From NCBI GenBank assembly GCA_016748015.1, contig JAAOMT010000397.1:9581-68319 (forward strand): a stretch of 58,739 bases of DNA, given 5' to 3'. The notes under the pieces are model-generated. The model had not been told where the DNA came from, did no database searches, and saw only the letters and a list, made by a program, of their open reading frames with translations. The DNA is from Geosiphon pyriformis uo1. Lineage: Eukaryota > Fungi > Glomeromycota. Each line of letters opens with the position of its first letter. The stretch's first letter is position 1. Shown here piece after piece: positions 34,392-54,978 of this stretch. Both the position numbers and the translations under genes were made by a program.

Positions 34392-35974
34392 ATATAATTC
34401 TACAGAGAACTAGCACTAACAAGAACAAACCAAAAGTGGCAGAATCAAAAAATATAGGAGCAAACCATTTAGGATTCGCGAAATTTTTGTTTCAACAATA
34501 CAGCCAACAATTAGAATTAAATAGTAATCATTACCCAGCCAAATCAGCCTTCAACTTCTATGTCAATGACAAAATCACTAAATCCTTAGGAAGAACAGTT
34601 AACATTGAAGCAGCAAGAGAAAACTTTTACACAGAATTATTCCAACACACCAACTTACCAAGGAACTATAGTTTTGTACCAATAATCAGAGAAATTAACC
34701 AAACTATTGAAAGATACACTTAACAACAATTTCCTATCATCTATGCAGATAAAGGCAAAGGAAGGTTACAAACACCAGCAATAATGCCTAAAGAGATACA
34801 ATTACCAACCTGAAAGAAACAAAGAATTAAATCCCCACCATATCCATCATATAATCACACACCCGGAAACACTATCAATATTTTATCTGCAGGTGCATTC
34901 ACATCAAACGCGACATTAATATTTGGACAATTCCCATTTCAAAGTAACAAAAGAAAGTGGAGTTATTAGAACCATATGGCGAATATTTTGAGAGATTTAA
35001 ATTGTGATCACCAACACCATTAGGAATTTAATCACTGCCATCTCCACCAGATTTTGGAATCTCTGATCCATGGAAGGTAACAGAATGAAAAAAAAGAAAC
35101 TGAGGATCAAGAATTTACTTACTAGAACCTGATCACTAAAAACCCAGAAATTGAAACCCTGAATCTTCAAAACCAGCAAAATTTAAATTCAGTAAATTCG
35201 GAAGTTGAAACTCCAAATATTCAAACACCACCAACTCAGGATAATCGAAACTCTGATTTAATTAATCAACCAAACTTACCTCTGGTAATTGTTATTGATC
35301 AATCACTAATTGATCCAATAGCTGAACCCATACAGCAGCCATTTCAACTACCACCTTAACAAAATCAACAACCACTTCAACAGCCACCACAACCATTCAA
35401 CTTAGACCCAATGGCCTATGCACCAATCGCAAAACTGGATAATTTCACCAGCAAAGAAGACGACGCTCAAGTATGGCTGAATGATGTAAAAAAAGCTATC
35501 GTAGCCAACGGATGGAATGACACCTGAGCAATGCAAGCCATTCCCTATTTTCTCAAAGATACTGCCGATTCATGGTATCAGAGCTTGATCAATAAACCAC
35601 AAGACTTCAATGCCTTCAAAGTGGAATTTTTAAGATACTTCAGCAACAATAAGAGAAACTGAAGCAGTCACTACTTACCTGGGATGCTTCCATAGAAATC
35701 TGTGCTAGATTCAAGTAATTAATGCCAACTATTTTACAGCACCACAGATCCTTAACCAGTTTATCTGTGGTCTGCGCAGCAGCATCTTGCAACATGTATG
35801 CCCATTGCATCTAGGCATCCTTCAAGATGCAATTATACATACCAGAGATTTCGAATCAGCTGAGTCCAAGGCCAACCACATCCAAGCTGTTAATCTAGTG
35901 ATAAATAGATCATCTGAATTAGACTCCAAATTGAAACAATTCAGTAATTCAATTAATCAGAAATTAGAAGAATA

Positions 35975-36546
35975 CTTCCTCTTGAATTGTTCCAAGTAAG
36001 AATCCTAGCTAGAGAGTAACCACCAAAAACATTAACTAAACCCAAACTTAAACATTTCCTAAGACTCGCCCCCTTGACTAAATTGTCTTCATTGAAGTCC
36101 CCATCCAAAACAACAAAAGAACTCCTATTGACAATATCAGCAATGAATGAATTAATAACAGAAGCCTGAGCAAAATGGTTACCACCAGACACACAAGCAT
36201 AAAGCCCAATAACAGACACAGAAAGCTTGTTTTTGAACAAAAGGCAAATTGAAAGAACCCTGCCCTTCACCTCCTCGACTTTGAAAACATGACGAGCCAG
36301 AGAATCATTCACAAAAATAGCCACACCAGTCCCACGAAACCCAACATCCAGACCAGATGTAAAAACCCGGACACCCTCAAATCTTTTCATAATCCATGGT
36401 TGTAAACTGGAACACAACTTGGTTTCCATAACAATCGAGATCGAACTACTAGATTCCTTATGCCAGCGATAAATGTCCTCCTGCTTTGCAAGATTGTTCA
36501 TTCCCCTAATATTACACATGGCAATTTTCCAAATAAAACTGGTCAT
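35975..36546 (-). pseudogene. LINE ORF2 N-terminus: APE-type endonuclease
   Basis: WKIAMCNIRGMN, METKL, GVAI, IGLYA, LDGDFNE, TWNNSRG. Confidence 0.9.
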
Positions 36547-38405
36547 TGTGATAAAGAGATAACTGAAGAACCCAAGCCAGCACATAACTGATCCAACTTA
36601 ACCAAAATTGAACCAATGGAGATGTTGAGGGCAACCAGCTTTGATTCCAGACCACCAACTTTGGAAGTCAGGACTTTGGAACTACTTGGACTCAATAGTG
36701 AACTGGTAACACCTGGAGAGAAAGAAGTAGGCTGGACAAAAGGATCATCAACCGCCATGTCAAAATCCAAGTCGGAATTTGCAACCACAAGAGAAACAGA
36801 GGTTGGGAACTGAAAAACTACCACAGAAGGAGCCAATTGAGAGGAAGGCACCAAAGGTGCTGAACTAATATTGTCAAGATGAGAAAAAATGTTCGAAATT
36901 TGTTCAGACATAAGCTCTACAGAGCATTCTAAAAGCGCTTAGTGAGCACTTAAAGGAGAATTGACCACAGGAAGAAGGGGGAGTACTCCACCTGAACTCA
37001 AATCACCGGAAGGCGGGGAACTGGAACCAAAACCAGCACGAAAACCATGAGAGACTGAAGCAACTGAGACCACTTGAGCCCAAGATTTGCCACCAAAGGC
37101 AACAGGATAAGAGATCGGCACATTTTTCTTCACATACAATTTGGCCAGCTAGAAACGAGTATCAGGGTTGGTAGGCCTTATAAAAAACTTTGAAGATTTG
37201 AAAGCTGATGCAACCTCAGCATCACATTCCAAGGCAGAATGACCAAACTTTCTACACTGTTCACAGTGAACCAAATCCAGCCTAGCCCATGAAAGTTTCA
37301 TACTACCAAGGATTGGTTCTGTGCAAAAAGCTGACTCCAAAATCTCATTAGAATCAAAACACACAACAGCACAGCAGACCCTATTACCAGTCTCCAATAA
37401 CCAATTTATAACACAAGTTTTTCCACCAGCCCCTTCAAGAAGATCCCCAAGATCATGAGCAGTAGTTCCCATTGGCAAAGTAAACAAAAGTGCCTTGAAC
37501 TGGTTCCTAGACACCCAAGTTTCATGGTTGCTCACCACCATAGTCACACAAACTGAGTCTTTACCAATCAGGAAGGACCACCTAGCAGTCAAAAACACAG
37601 CCTGTTCCAATTCGGCGAATTCCACCACAGTTTTTTGCCATAAACTAATCAACTGGATTTTGATTGACTTAATTTCTCCAAACTTGGATACTGCGGCGAC
37701 GATCATTTCTTTTGGCGTGTCCATGGGAATTTCCTTGATCACTAAAGCCCAATCTGAACATATTCTTTGTCTCTTAAGATCACTGTTTACAATGATGTTA
37801 TTTTCCCTGGCTAATGACACGGCTTTTTTCATGCTTGCTTCAGAGATGAAGATAGATCTAATGATCCCTTCAAATTTTGAGGGGGTAGTGGCCTCTCCAA
37901 AACCATTGATTTTTGAAAATAATTTTCTTATGGCATGAGTTTTGGCTGTCGCCGATTTCCCTTCCACAGCCGAAAGATTGACGTCCAAAGCAAAAGATTT
38001 TTTTACAGCTACTTCCACCTGAGTTTTAATGATTTTGGAATCAATCCACACCTTATCCAAAGAAAAAGTCTTACGGGGGAGAAGAAAAACCTCTTCTTTC
38101 TCTTCTATGTCGAAATTAATAGAGCTGAGAGAGGAGCCAACAATCGCACCATTATTGAAATGCTTGGCTTGGGGTGTATTCATCTTGGAATCGAATACTC
38201 CTTCACCTTTGGAAGCCTCCCCATCAGTATCTATGCTATTAAACTGCCTGACCACTTGACCAAATCTACTACCTTTGAGAACCACACCATTACTTGATAA
38301 CTTAGCACTACCAGGAGGTTTTTTGACCTTATGACTTGAACCACTACTAACTAAACCAGAAGTTGGAACTCTGGACGATCTTTTTTTAGCACCAGTACTA
38401 CTCAT
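36543..38405 (-). pseudogene. LINE ORF1 (RRM-like domains, CCHC knuckle, coiled coil), with in-frame stops
   Basis: ORFs 37149..38405, 36939..37139 and 36543..36911 share one frame; CEQCRKFGHSALEC. Confidence 0.88.
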
Positions 38406-39324
38406 AGAAGCAGCCAGGTCAACAACAAAAGGATTTGTTTCTTGTAAAGTGATGGAAAACAGTATGAAATAGCAGAAAAAATTTCTTTCGAAATACGCTT
38501 TTTGAGGATTTTTAGGAGGTAAAAGAGAAAGAAGTTTTTATAATTGTAAATTGAAAAAATTTATAAATTTTGAATTAAATTTTTTTAACTGTATTTTATT
38601 TTTTTATTTATGCAAAAATTATATTTAAATTCTTTTAAAAAATAACTAATTGTTAATATTAAATTTTTTTGAAAATATTTATATAATAATCTTATAAATT
38701 TTAAGTAATTTATTTTTATAAATTTTAATTTTGTTTTTTTGTTAAATAATTACTAATTATGTTTTATTTTTTATAAAATATATTTTACAAAAAACACCAA
38801 ATATTACAAATAGATAAATAAATAATTAATTTATAAGTTAGTACTATTAATTAATAAAATTAAAAATTTTATTAAATTTAAAATTTTGGTAATTAAGTTT
38901 TTTGTATAATAAACAAAGATTTAAGTAATAGTAATTAACAATATTTGGTATTGAATTTTTTTGGCATAATAATTGGTTTATTCTAATATTTTATATTTTT
39001 TTAATAAGTAATTTAATTATTAATAAGTAATTTTATATTTATTTTTATATTTTTTATCAAACAATTTTTAATCTTGTAATTTTGAAATTTTTTTAATTAA
39101 TTAAATAATTAAATAATAATACAAAATAAATAAATAAAAAGTTAATATTTTGTTAATAATTATAATTAAAAGTTATTGTTTTAATATTATTAGATTTTTT
39201 AAATAAGCATTATTAATATTGATTGTTTTAATAAGTTTAATATTAAAAATAAATAATTATTAATAAAATAGATTATAATTTATATATATATACAATTTTA
39301 ATAAATAATTTAATTTAATAATTG

Positions 39325-41415
39325 TAATTTTATTGGCTGGTTTTTCACCAGTCAAAGTTCCCTCAAAGAGACACACTTGGGTTAGTCCCAGTGTTGCCTT
39401 TACCCCGACTAAGAGCCCAAAAGTTTTTAATAATAGACCAGTAAATAAGCTGGTCTTCCCCTTTATAGATTTAACACCTGATGTTTCTGGCACCACCTCC
39501 TCAAAAAAAATGATCAAAAAAACCAAAATTTCAAAAAAGTGGAAGCAGTCGCTTGCCTCTGCTATTGTTACACTGAACCTCTTTGTGGTTCCCAATGAGA
39601 TCTTAGATAAAATCTCCATAGCATCATCCGGCATATTATCCAAGATGGGCCAAAATCAACTACTGGCTGTGTTGCCAAATGTGGTGTCTTCTGGCAGATC
39701 ATTGCCAGTTTTAAAAGCAAAACAATTTTCTTTTGTTGGGTCATCTGTTCTTGGGAACTGGACTGATCAAATAGAAACTGATTCATTTTCTTCTCTAGTT
39801 TCTGGTGCTACTTTTGGTGGTGCTTGGAAAACTATTACTAGTCGTCAAAAGTTTGCTGGGTGGGTGGCCTTTACTCTGGTGCCTGGTGTTACTTTTAAGA
39901 TCAAATTGGCTCATGTTAAGACTGTTTTTCAGTCTGTGCATGGTTTCTTGGATGCTAAATCTGTTTGAAAAGATAATGTGAAGCTTTTCTGTATGGAGTT
40001 TGCTTCTCAATAGTCTTTGAAAGCTGTGTTTCTGGTTGAGCTTACAGGCTCTGTTTGTTTGACCACTCTCAAAATTGCCAAGTCTTTGGTGGTTTCTGAA
40101 TCTGGTTCCTCTCCTGCTGCTGTTGCACTGTGTAATGTACCTTTGGGTGTGTCTACTGCTGACATCAAGTTGGCTTTCAGTGTTTTTGGTAGTATTACTC
40201 GTGTTGTGCTGAAGCCTGCTGGTATTTGGCAGTATGTGGTGATTTATTTTGAAAAGTTGGACTCTGCTGTGTCTGCTTTGGAGCATTGGTCAGTCTTGAT
40301 GGGCAAGAATAGTGTTAGAATTCTTCCTCTGGTAAATCAAAATAAGACTATTTTGTTTTGTGATAAGTTTAAGGCCAAATTGGTCAATCTTCCTCCTGGC
40401 TGTACTGCTTTTGAAATCAGTGATATGATTTCTCAGATTGGTGGTCGAACATGTTTCATCCCTTGTTCTCCTGATTCTGGTTGTCATTTCCAGTTTGCTT
40501 TGATTATATTTGAATTTCAAGGTGATTTGGATTCTGCTGTAGTCAAGACTGGTACTCTAAGGAAATACCGTATTTGGTGGAAAACTTCTGGCTGCCGGTG
40601 CTGCTTTAGGTGTCAAGAAATGGGCTATCTGGCTATGGATTGCAAGATTTCTCCACCTCCTACTCCCAAGATTCCCAAGGTTTTCAAGTCTTGTTTTGTG
40701 AGTTCTGCTTCATATGCCAAGACTGCTGTTCCTTCTGGTCTTTCTGAGTTTCCTCCTTTAGTGGCTTTTTTGGCTGCTTCTGCTGCTGATCCTGCTATTA
40801 GTTCCAGGTTGGACTCTTTGGAAAAGCAGATTTTGGATTTGGCTGCTCTGGTTAAGTCTATTGTTAAGCCTGTTAGTTCTTTGGTTGCTTTGGTGTCTCG
40901 TCTTCTTAATGATAATGCTGTTAAGGCTGTTCAGGTCAAGAAAGATATCATTTCCATGAAGAGTGCTGCTAACAATTTTTCTAACCTTATAGTTAGAGTT
41001 TCCAAAGACATTGCTTGTTTTAGATTTGAGGTTGACTTTGGTGATATGGATTATGATGGTATGCTGGCTGCTAAGTCTTCTTTTTTAAGTGAAGACACTA
41101 TTGAGTGTATTATTGCTTTGTGGCAAATGTCTGGTGCTGAAACCAGGAGCAATATTAAGTCTACTAGATTGTTTTTTAGTGAGTTTATTTTTGACTCTAA
41201 GAATTTGAATGGTATTATTGAGAGAATTTGTGAGTTGGAGTTGTTCTCACCTACTTTTGATTCAGCATAGTGAGTTCTTGATTGGGCCGAATGTCTGATC
41301 ATGTGTAGAAAACGCATGATTTACGCTTATAATATAATCTCTTCTGTGGTATTATAGTTTTAGGTAGTATTTGGGTCTCGCTTGTTAAAATAAAATAAAA
41401 TAAAATAAAATAAAA
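39325..41415 (+). mobile_element. ORF1-only non-LTR element, copy 1 (5'-truncated; C-terminal type I)
   Basis: ORF1 39333-41270 (two internal stops; CFRCQEMGYLAMDC), 3' UTR 41271-41385 matching the LINE 3' UTR, (TAAAA)x6 tail. Confidence 0.88.
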
Positions 41416-41710
41416 TTTATTTTAAATACTAAATTTATTAACTTTTAAATTAAATAAATTAATAATTTAATGTTTTTTGGTTTTTAAAATTACTATTATC
41501 ATATAAATTTTTATAATACAAAAATTTAGAATTTTTAATAATTTTTATATATTTTAAATAATTATTAAAATTTTTAATATTTTTAAAATTTTTAAAATCT
41601 TTTTTGGTTTTTTAAAATTTTAATATTATATTTGCTAACTTATTTATTATATATATTAAATTTTATTATTTTTTTATTATTTTTTAAGTAATATTATTTA
41701 TTATAAAATT

Positions 41711-43967
41711 AAAAAACTCTTTATGTTCTTAATTTTATGACCACAATTAAAGCAAAGAGTAAAAAGACTGCAATTTTTTTTTTTAAAGTAACTAATAAAG
41801 TTTTAATATAAAAAAGTCTCTTTGTTATTAAATAGCTAAATATAATGTCTTAACTACATTTTCTTTAGATATTAATAATGAAAAGCTGTCTTTAATAATT
41901 GCTAAAACATTTTTTTCATCTTTGACTGGTTTTTTATTAATTAAAATTTCTTCAAAAAGACACACTTGAATTAGTTTTAGTATTGCTTTTATCTTTTTCA
42001 AAAGCCCAAAAGTTTTTAATAACAGACTAGTTAACAAGCTAATCTTTCTTATTATTGTTTTTATATCTGGTGCTATTAGTACTATTTCTTCAAACAAAAT
42101 GATCAAAAAGACCAATGTCTTAAAAAAATGGGAGCAATTGTTTGTCTCTGCTATTGTTATACTGAATCTCTTTATAATTCTAACTAAAATCTTAAGTAAA
42201 ATTTCCACTGTATTATTCAGCATATTATCTAAGATAGACCAAGATTAATCATTGACTGTGTTGCCAAATGTGGTGTCTTTTAATAAATTTTTGGCAGTTT
42301 TAAAAGTAAAGTAATCATTTCTTATTGGGTCATCTGTTTTTGAGAACTGGACTGATCAAATGGAAACTAAATCATCTTTTCTGATTTTTGATGCTGCTAT
42401 TAGTAATATTTGTAAAACTATTACTAGTTGTCAAAGGTTTAATAGGTAGATGGTCTTTACTTTAGTATTTGATAATATTTTCAAGATCAAATTGGCTTAT
42501 GTTAAAGCTGTTTTTTGGTTTGTACATGGTTTTTGGATGTGAAATCAGTAACAAAAGACAATTTGAAGCTTTTTTGTATGGAATTTGCTTCTCAAAGTTC
42601 TTTGAATGCTGTATTTTTGATTGAGCTTACAAGTTTTATTTGTCTTATTACTTTTAATATTGCCAAGTCTTTGATAATTTCTGAGTTTGGTTTTTTTTTT
42701 GCTGTTGTTGCACTGCATAATATGTTCTTAAATATGTCTGTTGTCAATATTAAATTAGCTTTTAGTGTTTTTAGTAAAAGTCTATTGGTATTTAACAATA
42801 TGTGGTTACTTATTTTAATGAATTAAAAACTGTTGCATTTATTCTCAATTATTAGTTAATATTAGAAAACAAAGACAGTATTTGGATTTTTTCTCTTGTA
42901 AATCAAAAAAAATTATTGTGTTTCATGATAAGTTTAGAACTAAGTTGGTCAATTTTTTTTTTGGCTGTACTGCTTTTAAGATTAATAATATGATTTTTCA
43001 AGTTGGTAGTCAAACTTGTTTTATTTCTCATTTATCTAATTCTGGTTGTTATTTCCAGTTTGCTCTGGTTATATTTGGCTCTTAAGTTAATTTGAATTCT
43101 GTAGTTGTCAAGACTGATACATTAAAAAAATGCTCTATTTGGTGAGAAACCTCTAGTTGTCAATGCTGCTTTAAATGCCAAAAGATGAGCCATTTGGCTG
43201 CAAACTATACAGTTTTTTTATCTTTTCTTTTTATGGCTTCTAAAATGTTCAAATTATGTTTTATGAGTAATGTTTTTTATGTTAAGGTTTTTGTTTATTT
43301 AAATTCTTTTGAATTTTTTTTTGACAGCTTCTGCTTTTTTTTCTGTGATTGTTGTTAATCTTCTGTTTTTTTTTGGCTAGTATTTCTGGAATCTGATTTG
43401 GTTAAGTTGTCAACTTTGATTAAATCAATTAATAAACTTATTGGTGTATTAATTACTGTATTTGAATATTTTATTAAAAACAATCTTACTTTTAGCAGTG
43501 TTTTTAGTTTAAAGATTAATAAGCTTATGGTTTATTTCGGTTTTTTTAACAAGATTGTTAGTAAGTTAGAAAAAAAAATAGTTTTTTTGAAGAAAAAATA
43601 CTACATAAATAATATTGATATGTCTGGTAATTTGGAGTGTTCAATTGGTATAGATAATAATATGTTTTTTAACTTGATGTTTTTTTGAACATATAAACCT
43701 ATTAATATTAAAACTGATTCTTTAAAAACAGCCAAATGACTGATTAAATTGGTTTTTTATAGTATTATTTTGTTTGAAATTATTTAGAAGATATTATTTT
43801 TGGATAAGTTTTCTTTTGTTATATCAATATAACATATTCTGAACTAACTTAAATAACTGGTTATATATAGAAAGTATATGAATTATATTTAGTACTAAAA
43901 TACTTAATTTGTTCCTAATTTCTAAATAGTAGTTGGATTTTGTTCATTGAATCTAATAAAAAAAAAA
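41711..43967 (+). mobile_element. ORF1-only non-LTR element, copy 2 (full length, heavily decayed; C-terminal type II)
   Basis: ORF1 41737-43832, 3' UTR, A-tail 43958-43967; collinear with copy 3. Confidence 0.85.
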
Positions 43968-44490
43968 TTTATCAAATCTAAATTAAAATATTTTTTAAAA
44001 CTAATATTTTTTTAAATTTATTTTTATTAAAATTGTCATCTAAAATAACAAAAAAAATTATTTATAGTTTTAGTTATAAATTAATTTTATTTATCTAAGC
44101 CAATTATATATTTAAAAAAATATTAATATTTAATCTTAAACCAATAATAAAATATTTATATTTAAAAAACAGTTTAAATAATAATAATTATTAATTTATT
44201 TTTAAAATCTTGTATATATATCTAACTAAATTATTGTTTACAAAAATTATAATACCAAATTTCAAATAATTAAAATTAAAAATATAATTTTAATTTTATT
44301 AAATTTATTTATAATTTAAAATTTAATTTAATCATAATAAATATAATAATTAAATTTTAATTATTTTATATTATTTATTAATATTAATTTACTTAACAAT
44401 ATTTTTTATACTTTTAATATTACATATAAATATTTTTTAAATTAAATTAAATATTAAAAAAAAACTATTTATAACTTATTTTTAAGAATA

Positions 44491-46793
44491 TTTTTTATTT
44501 TTATTTTATTTTTTATTAAAGTTTAACAAATAAGGCCCAACTACTATCTAATACAATAAAACTACATAAAGTTCTAAATTAAATATGGCTCACATGCTTT
44601 CTACATATAACCAGTTACTCAAGTCAGTTCAGGCTATACTATGTTGAAGCTTTTGAAGAAAACTTACCCAAAGCTAACATCTTCTAAACAATAGAAAACA
44701 AAGTAACACTACAAGGAACCAATCTAACCAGCCACTCAGCTGTTTTCAAGTCATTAGTTTTGACATCAATAGATTCATGTTCCCAAAGAGACATCAGATT
44801 AGAAAACACCTTATCATTCAAGCCAACCAAATGCTCTAAATTACCAGACATATCTATATTCTCCATGCAGCACTCTTTCTTTAAAGAAATCATCTTTCTT
44901 CCCAACTTACCAACAACTTTATTAAAGAAACCCATATGCATCATAATCTCATTAATTTTAATGCCAAGCTTGCTGCTCGAGACCAAATCACCATTAACAA
45001 ATTGTTCAAACAATTTGACCAAAAAACCAACTGGTTTGACAATAAACTCAACCAAAGCAGAAAGCTTAACCAAATCAGATTCCAAAGAAGATAATCAGAA
45101 CAGCACCAGAGAATCGCCAACAACAACTGGAGAAAAGACAAGAGGAGATAAAGGCGGAAATCCAGAGGAGCCCAAGAGAACAGAAGCTTTGGCATAAGAC
45201 TTGGGACCAACAAAATAAGATGTAAACACCTTGGAAATCTTAGGAAGAAGAGGTAAAGAAACCTTACAATCTGCAGCCAAATGGTCTAACTTTTGACACT
45301 TGAAACAATGCTGATAACCAGAAGTTTTCTACCAAATGCAGCATTTTCTCAATGTACCAGTTTTGGCAATAGCAGAATCCAAATTAATCTGAAACCCAAA
45401 TATAACCAGAACAAACTGAGAACAATAACCAAAATCAGAGAACTGAAGAATAAAACATGTCCGACCACCAACCTGAAAGATCATATTACTAATCTCAAAG
45501 ACAGTACAGCCAGAAGAAAGATTGACCAATTTGGTCTTAAATCTATTACAAAACAAAATAGTCTCATTTTAATTCACCAGAGGGAGGATCCTAATACTAT
45601 TTTTGCCCACCAAAACTGACCAATAATTTAAAGCAGACACAACAGAGTTTAAACTTTTAAAATAAATTACCACATACTGCCAAATGCCAGTAGGCTTTAG
45701 CACAACATAAGTAACACTACCAAACACACTAAAAGCTGTCTTAATGTTAGCAGTAGACACACCCAAGGGCATATCATGCAGTGCAACAGCAGCAAAAAAG
45801 AAACCAGACTCAGAAATTACCAAAAATTTGGCAATTTTGAGAGTGGCCAAATGTACAGAGCTTGTAAGCTCAACCAAAAATGCAGTTTTTAAAGACACTT
45901 GAGAAGCAAACTCCACACAAAACAGCTTTACATTGTCTTTTGATACTGACTTTGCACCCAAAAAACCATGTACTGACTGAAAAACAGTCTTAACATAAGC
46001 CAATTTGATCTTGAAAGTAGCACCAAACATTAGAATAGAGGCCACCCATCCAGCAAACCTTTGACAACTAGTAATAGTTTCTCAAGCACCATCAGAAGTA
46101 GTATTAGAAACTAAAGAAGGAGATAATTCAGTTTCCATTTGATTAGCCCAGTTCTCAAGAACAGGTGACCCAACAGAAGAAAATTGTTTTGCTTCTAAAA
46201 CTGGCAATAATCTACCAGAAAACACCACATTTGGCAACACAGCCAGTGGTTGATCTTGGCCCATCTTGGATGATGTGTTGGATGATGCTATAGAGATCTT
46301 ATCTAAGATTTCATCAGGAACCACAAAGGGATTTGGTGCAACAATAGTAAAGACAAGTGACTGCTTCCACTTTTCTGAACTTTTGGTCTTTTTGACCATT
46401 TTTTTTGAAGAGAAGGTATTAGCAGCATCCAGATGTTGAAGCTATAGAAAGGAACACCAGCTTGTTAACTGGTCTATTATTAAACACTTTTGGGCTCTTA
46501 GTAGAGATGGAGGCAACACTGGGACTGATCCAAGTGTGTCTCTTTAAGAGAACTTTAACTGGTAAAAAACCAGCCAAAGATGAGGAAGTTGTTTCAATGG
46601 CTATCAAAGACAGTTTTTCACAATTACTGGGTAAAGAGAAGGCTTCTAAAACGTTTTGCCTAGTTGCTTCTACAACAAAGAGAGCTTTTCTGGTTGAAAT
46701 TTTATTAGATATCTCAGGACAGATATTAAGTGCAGCTTTTTTACTCTTTGCTCTGATCATGATTATAAAATTAAGGAGACAAAGAGTTTTTTT
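44491..46793 (-). mobile_element. ORF1-only non-LTR element, copy 3 (full length; C-terminal type II)
   Basis: ORF1 ~46766-44639 is seen as ORFs 46419, 46082, 45569, 45329, 45095 and 44684. 3' UTR and TAAAA-like tail at 44491-44516. Confidence 0.88.
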
Positions 46794-47113
46794 AATATTT
46801 TTTTATTGAAGAATATTTTATTAAGTTTTAATCATACAATATTAAAATATAAAAGTTTAATCAATTTAACTTTAAGATATTTTAACTTAAATATTAAAAA
46901 AACAGCAAATAAAAATATAATATCTAATTTAAAAAATATTAATAAGATTTAATTAGACAAAAACCTAATATTATATTTTTATTATTATTATTATTATTTA
47001 ACGAGCGAGGTCCAAACACTACCTAGAACTATACATCAAAGAAATGATCTAAACTAGGTGTGAATCATGCACTTTCCACATGTGACCAGCCATTCAAGCC
47101 AGTCAGAACAACA

Positions 47114-50100
47114 CTATGCAATTATATTAGCTAAAACTGGGTTCCCAATACCTAAAAAAAAAGAGCAAGATTTGTAAAAGCCAAAACGGATGCCAAAAGC
47201 TTCAGTAATACCAAGCAGTTTAACCACATCATTCAAGAATCTTGACGTCAAACCAGAAATTGAGATGGAAACCAAGCCATCCACCAAAATTAAGTCATTC
47301 TTTTCTATGTATGCACAATGCTTGGCATGGACCAACCAAATGTCATTCCTGAAAGCAATACAAATAGAGTGTACAAAATCAGCAATATTAATGCCAGCAA
47401 CTTTGGAATCATGGAAGATAGAAACAGCTTCCTGAAGCCATCCTTTGAAAATGAAACTCTTGCAAAGAGCTGAGAATACCAGGAAATCTGAAGCACAGAT
47501 CAACAGCATCTATAAAATGCTTGAAGAAGAGAGAGAGAGACCAGAAAGCATCTTCCAAGAAGACATACAGGATTCCAAAACCCAACGACGAGCTGCATCA
47601 TTAATCATACAAGAAAACACATGATCAGACACCTCCATCTTACCACAATATAGACACAAAACGCTAGGGTAACATTTATCATAAATGCGCTTTTAAACAA
47701 CAACAGAAAGCCGATGGTACAAAGCCTTCATAAAGTAAGTATGAATATCAGCAGTGCGTCTACTGGTGAAACCAGTTGCCATATGCAAATCAGAGTGCCA
47801 AACTCCAGAAAAGGTAAGCCAATTGACATCCGAGTGCAAATCACCAGCTAGAAACCCAGAACCAAAACCGATCTCCCAGCGCGCCCGATAGACAGCACGA
47901 AAAACATTTCAAACAAAGTGCCTAGAATTACCAGAAACAATATCACCATCTGCCAACAAAAACCATTTAGCAACACAAGGAGAGAGAAACTGATCAGAAA
48001 GAGCTGCAGCGTCAGCGATGCTATCGGTGCAATCATTTCCTAATACACCAGAGTGGCTTTTAATCTTGTGCCAGCTAACCCTCAAATTTTTTCTGTGAAT
48101 AATATTCCTAATATGCTGGTGCTCAACCCAACACTGATTGTGAAAATCAGGACACACCAAGTTAACCTCTGATTTGCAAGCATTCAAAGCAGCCTGGTTA
48201 TCTAAAAACAGGCAAACAGAATGATCCACAGGTACACACTTCAGAGCCAATGCTATAGCCTGCAACTCTGCCAAAGTAGACAACATTAAACCCTAAACAC
48301 AGACACCTAAACCCAAGTCAATGTCCTCAAAAAAGGCAGCAGCTCCGGCCTTACAACCAGTCATGCCCAAATTTTTCACCGACCCATCTGTATACACAGA
48401 CAAACTATTAGTGCCAACCCAAGAAAGACAATCATATACAGACACAAAATCATCAGAACCACAAATGTCCATAGGGCTAACACCACACAAAGCCAAAGAA
48501 GAGAGAGGTGTACCACTAAAAAATACAACAGAGTGCCCGAACTACTCAGAAACTGGGCCACAAGGATCCAGTTTTTTCCACCACTTAAAGGTGTACTAAT
48601 CAAAGATATCCTCATGATGATCCTGAAGCTGATCCACAAAGACAATGCCATATCACCAAAGAGAAGGCATGTATTTGAAAAACAAGGATTTACCCAGAAC
48701 AGTAGATATAGGCACCCTATCACGAAACCAAAAAGAGCTGGCCAAAGAGCCACCTAAAGACAAATTGCATTCAAAAAGAATGTGTACCAAACTTAACAAG
48801 AAATTATTGGAAACACTGACATGGATATGAGCTGGTGAACTCAATGAATGAATGGGGTGCCAATACAGAATCTGCAAGTCATAAGACCTGTGATTAAACA
48901 ATTGACCCAGGACCCCGCAGGAGTTCACAAAACTAATAAGTAAAGCAACCTTGCTTTTACACTGACATTGTGAAAATGACTTTAAACCGAAAAAGGAAGG
49001 ATGATAAATCATGTTACTAGGAAAATTGAGAGAAAAACCAGATTTAAGTTTCAAACCCTTATGAATCAGAGCATTCCATTTGTCATACACACTAACAGGA
49101 ACAAAACTGAATTGTGTCTTGTAGCTGACTATAGGATAAAGAACTGCCAACATCAGGTACAAGAACTGCTTATCTGAAACCACTTTCTTTAGAACCAAAT
49201 TGCTGAAAAAACAAATGTCTAAATACACTTTAGCTAAACTAGGCTTAGAAAGACCATTAGTTAAGAGAAAGATACCAAGATACTGATGAGATTTGCCTTT
49301 TTTGGCTATGGAAATGGGTGAACCACTGATGAAAAGAGACAGATTGCTGATCCTGCTATTAATAGAAATGACCACAGTTTTGTCATTATTGATTGAAATG
49401 TCATTAATCTAAAAAAATTCATTAGCAACATTGAGAATATGTTGAATAGCAGCCTGACTGCTGCCAACCCAAATCATGTCATCAACAAAGGCCCCAGCAG
49501 CAAAGAAAGTAGAAAACCCAGCCTAAGATTCAGCGTGACTACTTCTAGAGACAAAATGGAAATTAAGTCTATACCTGTATACACTCTTTTGATGCTTGAC
49601 TTCACACAAAAGAGGATCATAAAATATGTGCCAAAGAAGAGGGGAAAAAACTTCTCCTTGGTCCAACCCATCATGTACACTATAACCATCAGTTAAACCG
49701 AAATCTGTCATAACCCAATTGGTCTGATTTCTATGAATATTACCACAAAAACAAATAAATTTGTCACACATTTTGATTCTGACCAAACACTTCTTGAGAT
49801 GCTCCCATCCAACAGAGTCATACACTTTTCGCATGTCCTACAATACCAGCTAGAGCTCTTGGTTCTTCTCCAAAGCATTTTTAACAATCAAACCAATAGC
49901 AAAAATAGGAGTTTGGGTAGTTGTACTCTTCAAAACTAAAAAATTATCTCCACGAAGAATGTTATGAGCACTGCACGCCAGTGATATCCTGTTGAAGAGG
50001 ATCTTATGAGCTGTTTTAATCAAGACTATAGGTCAAATATTTGTGAGGACACTTTTCGACTTGTATGGTTTAGGGATCATCGAAATCCAAGCTTCCCTCC

Positions 50101-51781
50101 AAGGACCAGACACAGACTCATGAGACAGACAAGAATTCAGAAGCACCAAAAGCATATCCAGAACAGACCTATTACTGTGCATCCACAGCTCATTTGAAAT
50201 ACCTGAAAGACCAGCAGCCTTGTTAATAGGCAGATCAGAAACCATACCAAACAATTCCAAAAACTCAATTGGCTGCATTACATCAGAAAAAGCCTCATTA
50301 AAAACGTAATTCAATAGCTGATACTGACAGTATCACATATCAGAAACATCGGGAACCACCCTATGCTTCTTAGTCCATTCTTCCATGATTTCATCCACCC
50401 TTGATCTCACAGGACCAGGTTCCAAAATCAGCTCATCGTCCACAACCAAGTAATCCAAAACAATCTTATGGAAAGTTCGCTCCAGAATGCTCCGAATAAT
50501 GTAACCCTTGTTCAGCTCGAAACTTTCCATTCTCTTATTGATTGCTGATTTAATTTGAGATTCCTCTATGTGCTTCAATTCCACCATTTTAAGTGAGCAA
50601 TAAGTTTTTTTGATCTTAGAAAAAGCTGACCAAACAGTATTAAGAGGAAAGCTAGAGAGAAAAAGAAATCTGACCACAGAGGCATTATCATTATCAAGAG
50701 AACTCCAGACATCCAACAGTGAAATGAATTTGTCACAACAAATCAACCGAAAAGCTTTAATCAGCTTCGATATCAAAAGTTCCAACTTATAAAATTTGGA
50801 TGAATTCCTAGTGAAGACACCATCATAGTCCTTAAATCATTTCTTCTTGAACACCTCATCAGCTGAAAAAATCATTATCTTGTGAACAATGTCTCACATT
50901 GCATCCAAATCTGAGAATTACTGGGAGACAATAAAATCATCAAAGAACATGGCAGCATTAGCTGCCGTAGCACCCTTGAATTTGTTCCATTTCACGTTAT
51001 CAGCACCCTTAAAATTAAACTTCCAACAATCTCTATTCACCTGTTTGCGAAGAAAATTCAACTGCACATCCAATAAACCACCCAAACCCAAAGACACAAA
51101 AACAGCCTGATAGTCCATTTCAAAATACTCACCAACATCTGAGACACTGCAGTGTACTATTGCATTAACCAAATTTGAAGAAACAAATATATAGTCAATC
51201 ATTTTTCTAGCACCCCTAGAGTTTGCCCAAGTAGGCAATTTCACAGCCAGGCTTTTGACCAAAGAATTTGCCAGACCCAAATCAAGGCACTTCCTAAAAC
51301 TTGCACACTTATGAGAACCATCTTCATTGAAATTACCACCAAGAATAATGAAAGAAGATTTATTGACAGTCTTCGCAATGAGAGAGTTGATTTCACCAGC
51401 CTGAGATAACCAAACTGCCAGAGAAACACCAGCATAAAGCTCCAGAATCAACACAGAAAATTTACTCTTGAAAAGTAATTTAATGAACAGAAGCTGACCA
51501 GACACCTCAGAAATCTTGCACATATGATGAGCCAAAAAAACGTCCATAATAACAGCAACACCCACACCCAAGTGACCAGAGTCTAAACCAGAAGTGAACA
51601 CTCGAACACCATCAAACTTATCTACAATCCACGAACAAATCTTACTTCTTAATTTCATTTCAGTAATGATAGAAACCAAATTGTTTATTTCCTTATGCCA
51701 CTTAATAATGTTTTTCTGCTTAGCAGGATTGTTCATGTCCCTAACATTGCATGTGGCAACTTTCCAGACCAAACTGCTCAT
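47114..51781 (-). pseudogene. LINE ORF2: APE endonuclease - RT - RNase H - C-terminal CCHC
   Basis: WKVATCNVR, GGNFNE, IDYIF; KAAGLSG, MIPK, DMRKVYDSV, GLDQGEVFSPLLW, AFVDD (~49480), YLGI; VYTDGS, AELQAI, WHKIKSHSG..GND; CLYCGKMEVSDHVFSC. Confidence 0.92.
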
Positions 51782-53571
51782 TGAGTGAGAGGTAGAGACA
51801 CCGAATGCACATCTATACTATCCACTTTGGCCGAAAGGCCCAAAACCGTTTCCATTAGACACTTTATGCTGTCTTCCAGCTTAGACACCGAAGACATATC
51901 GAAAGACACTGCTCTCACAACAGTCTCACCACCAGTGAACACACCCGAGCTCTCACTCATCACTACATCCACCCCTTGATCCTGTGATGAAGAGGTCACC
52001 AACGGCTGACATCCAGGGCTAGGCTGGGGAACCATTGGTCCAAATGCATCCAATCTCTTAGCCAGCTTACCAACTTGCTCCGCGAGGCTGGTGAGACTGC
52101 ACTCAAGAGTGGCGAACCTATTGTTGACCTCCATTGTAACCAGTAGGGACAGCTTCATCTCCAAAAAAGAGCCATTATCCACCAAAACATTCTGACTAGA
52201 AAGAGGGAGAGAAGAAGACCTGCAAGCAACTTTTGCCCAAGATGGATCACCAAAAAAGACCAGACAAGCAACTGAAGCCAAGCATTTGGCATAGATGGCT
52301 GCCAGCCTGCTTTTATCTGTGTCCGAGAAAGCCCTACATGACAAATTACCAGAAGAAAATTTCCCACCAACAACACAATCCAATGACATATGACCCAACT
52401 TCTCACACTTGGTGCATTTAGCAGAAATGAGGCAAGACCAGTAGAGATTGGCGTTTTTAAGTACTGATGTGGTTCCCACAGCAGCATTCAATGATTCAGC
52501 AGAGTCGAAGCAAACAACAGCACACCTGGCCTGAGCATACATAACAGGATGATGATCAATGACACATGTTTTCTCATCCACAGATCTAACAAAGTCCCAG
52601 ATATTATGAGCATTAGTCCCCATTGGCAATGTGTAGAACAGTGCCCTATGTCAATTCCTTGCATCCCATGTCTTTTTGTCTGAATTAGCTCTAGCCATGC
52701 ATACAGCATCTTTCCCAATCAGAATAGACCACTCAGCTGCAACCAAATCAGCCTGATCCGATTGCTCGAAATCTACCACTGCCTTCTGTCACAGCCTGAT
52801 TAATTGCATCTTGATCACCTTAATAACTCCAAACTCGGATAATGCAACGCGCACAGCTTCAGCTGACATTTCAATCAGAATTTTTTTTATGACCACAGCC
52901 TGATCTAACCACCCAAATGATTTTTTGAGATTGGTGTTTACTAGGATCTTCGCACTCGCAGCCTTATCAGTAGCTTTCATTAGACTCGATTCAGAAGTGA
53001 ACGTCACTTTGATGATCTCTGAGAATTTTGAAGGAGTAGATGCCCTTCCAAAACCATTGATTCCAGAAAATAATTTCCTCACCACCACAAGCTTTTCCTG
53101 AGAAAATTTGCTGGCCACCTTATCTAAGCTAATATCCAATGCAAATGACTTCCTGACTGGAACATTAACTAAGTTTTTCATAGGAGGGGGGAGCTTAAAA
53201 GGAGCATCTGAGAGAACACTATCATCATCACTACTCTTTGAGAAATCAATCTTTCCCAACGACTTGCCCAATGCCTTCTTGGTTTTAACTTTTGAACCCG
53301 TGAGTGTTTGATCATGATCTCCACCAGCCAGAGCACCACTTTTACCATAATCAAAGCTGGTCTTCTCTACCAGACACTCTTCTTCCATATTAACACTCTT
53401 AGATTCAGTAGTGTCCCCAGTCTCTGAACCCCATGAATAGCTCTCCTAAACTTTAGAAGCTACTTTTTTACTACTGGAACCATCTTCCAAAACACCTCCC
53501 CTCCTCTTCTTTTTCGACAAGACTGTTTCAAAACCACCACCAGAACTAGAACTCTTAGCAGCCTTCTTCAT
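51778..53571 (-). pseudogene. LINE ORF1
   Basis: MKKAAKSS start at 53571; RRM-like segments, CTKCEKLGHMSLDC knuckle, coiled coil; several in-frame stops. Confidence 0.88.
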
Positions 53572-54978
53572 GATAGTAGTATTTGGGCCAACAGCAATCT
53601 TGTAATCAAACAAAAACAGTTTAGAGATATCGTACTGAATGGTAAAAATTCTTTTGAAAAAACTTTTGACTCTTTTTTGGGAATTTTGGATGAAGAAAAA
53701 AAGGAATTTGCTTTTTTATTTTCAGTTATATTTTAAAATATTTATTTAAAATCTATAAATAAAAAAATAAATTAAAAAAACATTAAATAAAATATATTTT
53801 AACCAAAAATTTGGCCAAAAACAACTATTTAAATTTATAATTTACTATTATAAATGATTATATAAAAAATAAAACATTTTTTTTAACATAAAAATTAACA
53901 AAATAAGATTAATTAATTTAAAAAAACATATATTTTTAGAATTTATTAAAAAATTTTTTAAGTAAATTATATTTTAATTTAAAATATTTAAAATATTTAT
54001 AATTTTTACTAAAAATACAAATAATATAATAAATTTAATTTAAATTTTTTTTAATTTTAAAATAAATAATTATATATTATATTTTATAATAATATATATA
54101 ATTTATAATGTAAATTTTTTAGATTTATTTAAAAGATTATTATAAACAATAATATACATAAACAAAATAAACAATACAATTTTAAATTTATTTTTTTGTT
54201 TTTATATTGTTTAATTTTTATTAGTCTTAATTATATATATAAAATTTTTATTAATTAAAAAAATATTTTAAAGCCAATAAATTAATCTAATTAAATTTAA
54301 CATATTTTATTATAGCTTTTTATTATAATCTAATTAGTTATTATTAGATTAATATAATTTTATTAAATTTAAATAAAACTAAAATAATTATTTTTTTAAA
54401 AATATTATGAATTTTTTTTTGAAAATTATAACTTATTTAAATATATTTTTTGTTTTTCAAGATTTTTGTTTATTTAGATTTTTTTATTTTTAATTAATGT
54501 TATAATTTTTTGCAAATTTTTTTTAAAAATAATATAAATCTAATAATTTTTTAAAATTATTTATTATAAAAAATAATTTTTTAACAATTATTAACAAATT
54601 AATATCTAAAATTTAAAGTAATAAAATAAAAATAAAAAAACTATTATTTTATTTGTATTTATTTTTTTAGGTTTAAAATATTTGATTAAAAGTATAAAAA
54701 AGTCTTACTTTTATTATTTGTTTTTTAATTAATATTAATATTTAAAAAAAAATTTATCTTTTTTACAAAATTAGTTTTTAAATTAATTAATACAAATATT
54801 ATCTAAAATTATTTTTAAAATTAAAATTATTTTATTATTTAAGTTTTTAATATTTTTAACCAACTCTTTAAATTTTTACGTAAAAATATTATTTATAAAA
54901 CCATAAATAGTTCTATTTATTGACTTTTTTTAATTATGATATTATTAATAATAGCTCTTAAATTTTTTTTTTTTTAAG

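Follow-up and report, generated by a model that had tools for sequence, protein, structure and literature searches.

The DNA analysed here, which we call the window, is a 58,739-nt stretch of the Geosiphon pyriformis genome (contig position 9581-68319 of a 128-Mb assembly with 792 contigs), and it contains three related copies of an element that we refer to as HAL, a working name for the half-LINE family of this fungus that carries only ORF1 (LINE, long interspersed nuclear element; ORF, open reading frame). HAL is probably a family of non-autonomous, protein-coding retrotransposons lacking long terminal repeats (non-LTR retrotransposons), and its copies would depend in trans on LINE ORF2 protein for their mobilisation. 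The window is very AT-rich, with a guanine-cytosine content of 13-41% in 2-kb steps. Repeat finding and BLAST delimited the three copies of a 2.26-2.30 kb element; the original prediction had already placed them in the window, and its coordinates were correct to within a few bases (copy starts at 39333, 41716 and 46787). It had described an A-tailed family without ORF2, and the genomic copies, Pfam and the junction reads agree with this description; the copies are also flanked by target-site duplications (TSDs).

A full HAL unit is approximately 2.29 kb in length and consists of a 22-nt 5' leader, a 708-codon ORF1-type gene, a 3' module of 120-122 nt and a short TAA/A-rich tail. Copy 1 (39333..41415, plus strand, tail type I) has an ORF1 frame at 39333-41267 with two in-frame stops (~39966 and ~40011), followed by the stop codon and 3' module at 41268-41389, with six helices and a covariance-model score of 112.6 bits, and by an (ATAAA)n tail up to 41415. 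This copy is 5'-truncated, as predicted, since the first ~211 nt are missing by comparison with genomic copies bearing the conserved start. Copy 2 (41716..43967, plus strand, tail type II) starts after an A run and is full length and decayed, with its ATG at 41737, 13 stops and ~10 frame-disturbed codons in the frame, a 3' module at 43830-43951 and an A tail to 43967. Copy 3 (44491..46787, minus strand, tail type II) is also full length, with five stops, a start codon mutated to ATA (46766-46764), a 3' module at 44522-44641, an A-rich tail at 44491-44521 and AAAATATTCTT as candidate TSD. Identity is 81% between copies 1 and 3 (1431 nt aligned) and 71% between copies 2 and 3 (2301 nt aligned).

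Genome comparisons covered the best 40 scored matches for each query, out of 1358-2240 first-look candidates. The best 40 of 1358 candidates found with copy 1 were 89-90% identical and all spanned query positions 9-2081/2091, the best 40 of 1872 found with copy 3, a search proposed along with the original prediction, were all full-length (1-2303), and the best 40 of 2240 found with copy 2 included ~27 full-length matches (1-2257), the others being partial. Full-length matches of all three queries crossed the ORF-UTR (untranslated region) junction without a break. Twenty-nine fetched relatives of copy 1 shared the fixed 5' start ACTCTTTGTCTCCTTAATTTT-ATG and a 3' end reading ...GGGTCTCGCTCGTTAAA then ATATAATAA(A)n, and were surrounded by unrelated, unique flanks. 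Because the flanks are of low complexity, deliberately mismatched flank pairs were used as a control for TSDs; duplications of at least 10 nt were found in 23 of 30 copies, compared with 28% when the flanks were mismatched, and clear cases include AAATTAGATTAG, ACAACTCAAAAAA and AAACAATATAAG. The TSDs and 5' truncation of these dispersed, A-tailed copies are hallmarks of target-primed reverse transcription, and independent insertion, as had been suggested, is supported by the TSDs and the unique flanks. Copies sharing flanks, which would have pointed to duplication of DNA segments, were seen once: copy 2, copy 3 and the adjacent LINE form a block that is duplicated on contig C789.

The duplicated block extends over window 41711-48300 and C789:94273-100859 with the same spacing (524 nt between copies), and is either a segmental duplicate or a haplotig. 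Its parts are unequally similar (copy 2 97%, copy 3 94%, LINE-A 3' end 91%), which is consistent with patchy hypermutation. We also observed a second HAL within 1.5 kb downstream and in the same orientation at 7 of 30 loci, whereas ~1% would be expected from copy density; clustering was noted at L003:3436-5074, L009, L010, L007 and L030 and at window 41415-41716 and 46787-46997, and several HAL copies have a LINE 3' or 5' end a few hundred bases away. One HAL is nested within another at L003, and the L025 copy sits within the 5' UTR of a LINE-A-type element. The apparent 'tandem' layout of HAL copies is in part nesting (L003) and in part clustering in AT-rich DNA dense in transposable elements (TEs), and the clustering of HAL and LINEs may stem from a preference for targets in DNA that is AT-rich and tail-like. 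The 5' junctions often hold 2-21 extra bases between the upstream TSD and the fixed 5' terminus, usually ending in an A run (L005, L011, L022, L025 and window copy 3, 46787-46810); they may have been added without a template or through microhomology.

None of the HAL copies examined contained ORF2. The stop codon ran straight into the 3' module in all 32 copy-1-type (tail type I) ORF ends and in window copies 2 and 3, and this ORF-stop-module junction was constant in three subfamilies (2-7% transversion divergence) and both tail types. Fusion models aside, a protein joining a HAL-type ORF1 to reverse transcriptase (RT) was not found in 5.8 billion clustered proteins or 1.84 billion representatives. 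The long gene models that join the HAL ORF with RT or RNase H were rejected as fusions with adjacent, different LINE pieces: in P0125 a separate LINE, which has a different ORF1 of its own, comes after the HAL ORF, and in P0121 the HAL ORF is spliced to a 5'-truncated ORF2 from another LINE family.

At least 276 annotated 'hypothetical proteins' match the intact HAL protein, and G. pyriformis is the source of all of the best 120 (G9A89_...). Among the annotated gene models P0121, P0125, P0029 and P0109, some HAL ORFs are fused to LINE ORF2 fragments, to a kinase domain or to Ty3 gag. Since such models fuse HAL ORFs with their neighbours, the public annotation contains many TE-derived, chimeric 'hypothetical proteins', and for G. 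pyriformis hundreds of these entries represent a HAL ORF, either by itself or joined to LINE pieces next to it.

The 3' UTR of copy 1 (41265-41412) aligned with the 3' end of a LINE in the window, LINE-A (47119-46969), at 74.7% identity over 154 nt (E 3e-15). The alignment begins at the stop codon, so that the collinearity claimed by the original prediction was confirmed and HAL shows the homology to a resident LINE's 3' end that marks stringent tail sharing. The module was examined in 32 HAL and 43 LINE C-terminal ends from fetched DNA, and 73 sequences, window copy 2 among them, were aligned. From TAG to GTTAAA it measured 120-122 nt rather than the ~115 nt first given for the 3' UTR, and this length was constant across all HAL and LINE families sampled. 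Every HAL subfamily has the module, as do at least six LINE tail clusters; these families are only 55-66% identical, yet the exact length and the helices are kept. The 3' end had been thought to be borrowed from the neighbouring LINE. The homology stands, and the neighbour as its source does not, given the number of LINE clusters that share the module and the distances of 0.10-0.12 that separate HAL tails from the nearest of them; the adjacency of HAL and LINE in the window is incidental.

Using RNAalifold, five helices were found in the module, and a sixth, apical helix was placed by hand. Helix 1 pairs the stop codon with the 3' terminus, and one of the helices is a hairpin with a GGAAA-type loop. 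Across the five helices in 26 sequences, 95.2% of cells were standard pairs, compared with 32-38% when the partners were slid by 1-3 columns; double-change cells numbered 68 compared with 9-24, and none of 500 covariation shuffles reached the observed value. With the hand-placed helix included, 92% of cells were paired and 88 were double-change cells. A covariance model of 121 positions gave 80-131 bits on the four tails of the window, each of which was in its training set; it found no further module copy in the window and no match in the two metagenomic LINEs with the closest outside ORF1. No Rfam family matched within window 39000-48000. These results show that the fold of the module is conserved between HAL subfamilies and several LINE families.

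The intact 708-codon ORF was found in two of 29 sampled relatives (L007 and L010), and the other 27 carry 1-6 stops each. Pfam detected only RRM_1 and zf-CCHC in the HAL frame, the former at 28 bits in copy 1 (cut-off 20.7) and the latter at 18-20 bits, slightly below the cut-off of 20.8; residue C500 of the knuckle is almost invariant. An AlphaFold2 model of low mean confidence (predicted local distance difference test score 49; core 62-86) has a disordered region at 1-234, alpha/beta domains at 235-305, 322-400 and 405-480, then the knuckle, and a C-terminal part in which two long helices (550-629) precede a small helical end. In Foldseek searches the core resembled proteins with RRMs in tandem, among them raver1 RRM1-3 and PABP RRM1-2, with a template modelling score of up to 0.64 for the latter. 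The HAL protein is thus predicted to start with a disordered segment, to continue through three RRM-like domains and a single CCHC knuckle, and to end in a helical part.

Type I LINE ORF1p, a class reportedly defined by Khazina and Weichenrieder in 2009, has one or more RRMs and then a CCHC knuckle, and the HAL ORF has this architecture. At the amino acid level the HAL frame shares 28-30% identity with the ORF1 of either window LINE, in line with the distant relationship originally proposed, and among 1.84 billion representatives the closest relatives outside the family are ~28% identical. Two of these outside relatives were traced and are autonomous LINE ORF1s, since one is followed by an endonuclease and the other by RT and RNase H. 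It was also considered that the HAL C-terminus might be a remnant of an ORF2 C-terminus, left by fusion or deletion; no such similarity was found and the C-terminus is ORF1-like.

Most of the divergence between HAL copies is C-to-T hypermutation after insertion. Among 30 copy-1 relatives, transitions make up 90% of the variant sites (alleles), and C>T or G>A changes 78%; raw identities are therefore misleading. Cytosines had changed to T at a rate of 29% within CpG and 8-12% elsewhere, compared with ~0.05-0.1% for transversions of C or G, and all three codon positions were affected equally. LINE-A copies have the same pattern of hypermutation. Over the HAL loci (L002-L030), the LINE-A 3' ends (L032-L060) and window 39333-53707, C>T and G>A changes were observed on both strands, at 29-35% of CpG and 8-13% of non-CpG cytosines, with ~0.05-0.6% transversions and a mild 5' pyrimidine preference. 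Signatures of repeat-induced point mutation (RIP) were undetected in Gigaspora, a related arbuscular mycorrhizal fungus, and in Mucoromycotina (PMC8647823); in view of that report, a RIP-like or deaminase process at work in Geosiphon would be a novelty.

Two intact copy-1-type copies differ by ~0.5% transversions, and by this measure the copy-1 subfamily is a recent burst. Transversions between L010 and copy 3 numbered 0-2 per 60 nt up to approximately nt 1555 of the element, rose to 16-25 per 60 nt (mostly 35-40%, near random) at nt ~1680-2160, and were 10-14% in the module, whereas copies 2 and 3 are alike along their whole length. This jump implies that the copy-1 lineage has a different C-terminal domain, from approximately residue 545, as well as a different module; the three window copies do not form the single homogeneous family that had been assumed. 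Both C-terminal types recur in annotated proteins and are homologous, with 27% amino acid identity to each other and intermediates at 41-46%. The transversion profile indicates that a cassette made up of the C-terminal domain and the 3' module, present as tail type I or type II, was exchanged between HAL lineages.

A dN/dS (nonsynonymous to synonymous rate) test had been proposed for the ORF. The Nei-Gojobori method gave omega values of 0.45-0.69 and was rejected as evidence of selection, since shifted frames were equally low (0.34-0.64 in the out-of-frame controls), the mark of a transition-bias artefact. When only transversions were counted, omega in the real frame was 0.28 for L010 and copy 3 (95% confidence interval 0.13-0.64), 0.45 for L010 and copy 2, and 0.44 for copy 3 and copy 2, compared with 1.4-7.8 in the two shifted frames. 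The changes that distinguish the subfamilies therefore avoided amino acid replacement, suggesting that the ORF mattered while the lineages diverged. Purifying selection on the HAL ORF between subfamilies is thus indicated, and is visible in the transversion-only analysis alone. The original prediction had called the family old, a term to be used with care: ~78% of the variant sites (alleles) among copies come from C>T or G>A hypermutation, and the copy-1 subfamily is young by its transversions.

Next to the HAL copies, LINE-A (46969..53707, minus strand) is full length and degenerate, with its 5' terminus at ~53707, an ORF1 that starts with the ATG at 53571 and has a CCHC knuckle, an ORF2 with endonuclease, RT and RNase H regions that ends at 47117, the homologous 3' module at 46997..47116 (minus strand, 130.8 bits) and a (TAA)n-A tail. 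A LINE-B fragment (35960..38160, minus strand) holds an ORF1 with RRM and knuckle and the start of an endonuclease, and its ORF1 is the window's nearest relative of the HAL ORF (28% over ~280 amino acids). Transversion distances were calculated for the modules with 41 LINE tails sampled. Type I modules are nearest to LINE-A (0.124 transversions), and type II modules are nearest to each other and to LINE-C-like tails (0.100-0.106); HAL types I and II differ by 0.14-0.18, and LINE-A and LINE-C by 0.081. GTTAAA is followed by ATATAATAA, TAATAATAA or TGATAATAA in type I and LINE-A, and by (C)TTTAATAAAA in type II (two copies) and LINE-C.

The 22-nt HAL leader has no long similarity to the LINE-A 5' UTR. 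A resemblance was seen between its first 17 nt, ACTCTTTGTCTCCTTAA, and the 5' terminus ACTTCTTTCTCTCCTTCG observed at three LINE-A starts, and this terminal likeness suggests that HAL and LINE-A share an initiator. The LINE-A 5' terminus was defined at ACTTCTTTCTCTCCTTYG (L025:1130-1290, L026:3590-3660 and window 53650-53710, minus strand).

In the mechanism that we propose, HAL RNA would be transcribed from an internal start, and the ORF1 protein translated from it would coat its own RNA. The ORF2 protein of a resident LINE, with its endonuclease, RT and RNase H, would then recognise the shared 3' module, as in stringent pairs of LINEs and short interspersed nuclear elements (SINEs), and reverse transcribe the HAL RNA at AT-rich targets; inserted copies would quickly be degraded by C-to-T hypermutation. 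The shared module and the tail motifs are indirect evidence for such a use of LINE ORF2 protein. Several observations weigh against this picture of a selected, LINE-dependent element. C>T and G>A hypermutation alone can turn G-C into A-U and so inflate the count of 'compensatory' changes; G-U intermediates outnumber broken A-C cells by 136 to 35, and this ratio of ~4:1 goes beyond the expectation of neutral decay alone. The nearest sampled LINE tails lie 0.10-0.12 transversions from HAL tails, compared with 0.004-0.018 within families, and none of the 41 LINE tails is the near-identical tail of one identifiable active partner. An open ORF2 across the 894 available codons was seen in 0 of ~30 sampled LINE-A copies, and at the ORF2 end no more than 487 of 894 codons were open without interruption, in copies picked by their similarity to a decayed query. 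Conventional dN/dS gave no signal of selection, a McDonald-Kreitman-like comparison of shared and singleton variants was flat (odds ratio 1.12, p 0.49), with 97% of the 'shared' variants being transitions, which points to recurrent hypermutation and not to shared ancestry, and the transversion-only signal rests on just 27-125 differences. Four copy-3-type matches, at C705:309807-311959, C645:276329-278509, C653:307975-310163 and C376:29765-31992, stop at query 2156-2234, inside the 3' module and short of the tail.

Those four matches would also fit an origin of HAL as an abundant internal-deletion derivative of an unsampled autonomous LINE that has the same ORF1 and mobilises it, as would the LINE-like character of both HAL termini (the 5' 17 nt and the 3' module) and the depth of the inspection, which for each query reached the best 40 matches out of more than 1000 candidates. 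Apart from the fusion models, no protein with a HAL-type ORF1 and RT was present in the 5.8 billion clustered or 1.84 billion representative proteins; the ORF-stop-module junction is identical in three subfamilies and both tail types, and the sampled LINE ORF1s are just 28-30% identical to that of HAL. We consider this origin improbable. The ORF1p of mammalian L1 is built from a coiled coil, an RRM and a C-terminal domain, and recognition of the L1 3' end is relaxed and based on poly(A). HAL could in principle be mobilised through its A-rich tail alone, as are L1, HAL1 and Alu, with the module kept by common descent or for a role in RNA stability or translation. All copies do have an A-rich tail, and a LINE tail nearly identical to that of HAL was lacking among those sampled. 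Against this stand the module length, helices and compensatory changes that are kept across families of 55-66% identity, the fact that the module always travels with the swapped cassette, and the tail-proximal motifs that co-vary with LINE families, and we regard mobilisation by the tail alone as unlikely. That HAL copies are a family of host RRM-protein genes or retrogenes, such as a domesticated ORF1 comparable to L1TD1, is highly improbable. In its favour, protein-coding genes are annotated at many of the copies, and some of the ORFs are uninterrupted. Against it, hundreds to thousands of copies are dispersed and bear TSDs, tails and 5' truncation; 1-6 stops interrupt most of them, hypermutation has struck all codon positions alike, and copies are nested in other repeats.

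We therefore return to HAL as a non-autonomous half-LINE, and tentatively suggest an extension of this reading. It is conceivable that HAL, in a fungal lineage that diverged early, is a long-lived, self-encoding hyperparasite of LINEs, the ORF1 of which is kept by selection, and that it swaps its C-terminal and module cassette repeatedly to change helper families, type I being LINE-A-like and type II LINE-C-like. If this were true, the helper ORF2 protein would be recruited by the C-terminal domain of ORF1 in concert with the 3' RNA module. An abundant family, two natural tail cassettes and a short folded RNA that is shared with LINEs make it an approachable question what a LINE RT recognises and why a parasite keeps ORF1.

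LINE parasites with ORF1 only are already known from mammals (HAL1) and from Drosophila telomeres. In the literature searched, we found no description of a fungal one, and in a 2025 survey of TEs across arbuscular mycorrhizal fungi the words 'ORF1' and 'non-autonomous' are both absent (PMC11952901). A fungal parallel is the EKA family (AVRk1/AVRa10) of Blumeria graminis, which is multi-copy and derived from LINE ORF1 (PMC4641428). EKA and HAL are alike in being fungal multi-copy families from LINE ORF1, but EKA genes are truncated ORF1 parts within degenerate LINEs that were co-opted as effectors, whereas HAL is a self-contained ORF1 with a 3' tail. In Drosophila, HeT-A lacks ORF2 and ~40% of telomeric families carry only ORF1 (PMC13534243). 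HeT-A-type elements resemble HAL as non-LTR elements with only ORF1 (gag); they persist for long and need the RT of another element. They form head-to-tail telomeric arrays that serve the host, whereas HAL is dispersed, flanked by TSDs and heavily mutated; telomere association or head-to-tail arrays were not seen for HAL, and its copies are internal on many contigs with unique flanks.

Stringent SINEs carry the 3' end of a LINE, which is thought to be the recognition site of the LINE RT (PMC5786205). The shared LINE 3' end of such pairs corresponds to the folded 120-nt module of HAL. SINEs are short and non-coding, and driven by RNA polymerase III heads, whereas HAL is 2.3 kb in length and codes for a 708-amino acid protein that appears to be under selection. 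Mammalian HAL1 is presented in PMC5753468, with reference to Smit 1999 and Bao & Jurka 2010, as a non-autonomous, L1-dependent LINE derivative that encodes only ORF1p and arose several times. HAL1 and the Geosiphon element both have ORF1 only, and are dispersed, flanked by TSDs and A-tailed, with helper dependence in Geosiphon being inferred. HAL1 derives from L1, whereas the Geosiphon element has an ORF1 with RRM and CCHC domains, partner LINEs with RNase H and a structured 3' module shared with LINEs; it is fungal and, unlike HAL1, has no close LINE parent among the sampled LINEs. An ORF1 homologue and nothing else is encoded, as in an element that is HAL1-like by function, and the L1-type ORF1p and L1 ends of HAL1 proper are absent. 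Because of its three RRM-like domains and CCHC knuckle, its LINEs with RNase H and the lack of a relationship to mammalian L1, HAL of G. pyriformis is best regarded as an analogue of HAL1 and not as a member of that group.

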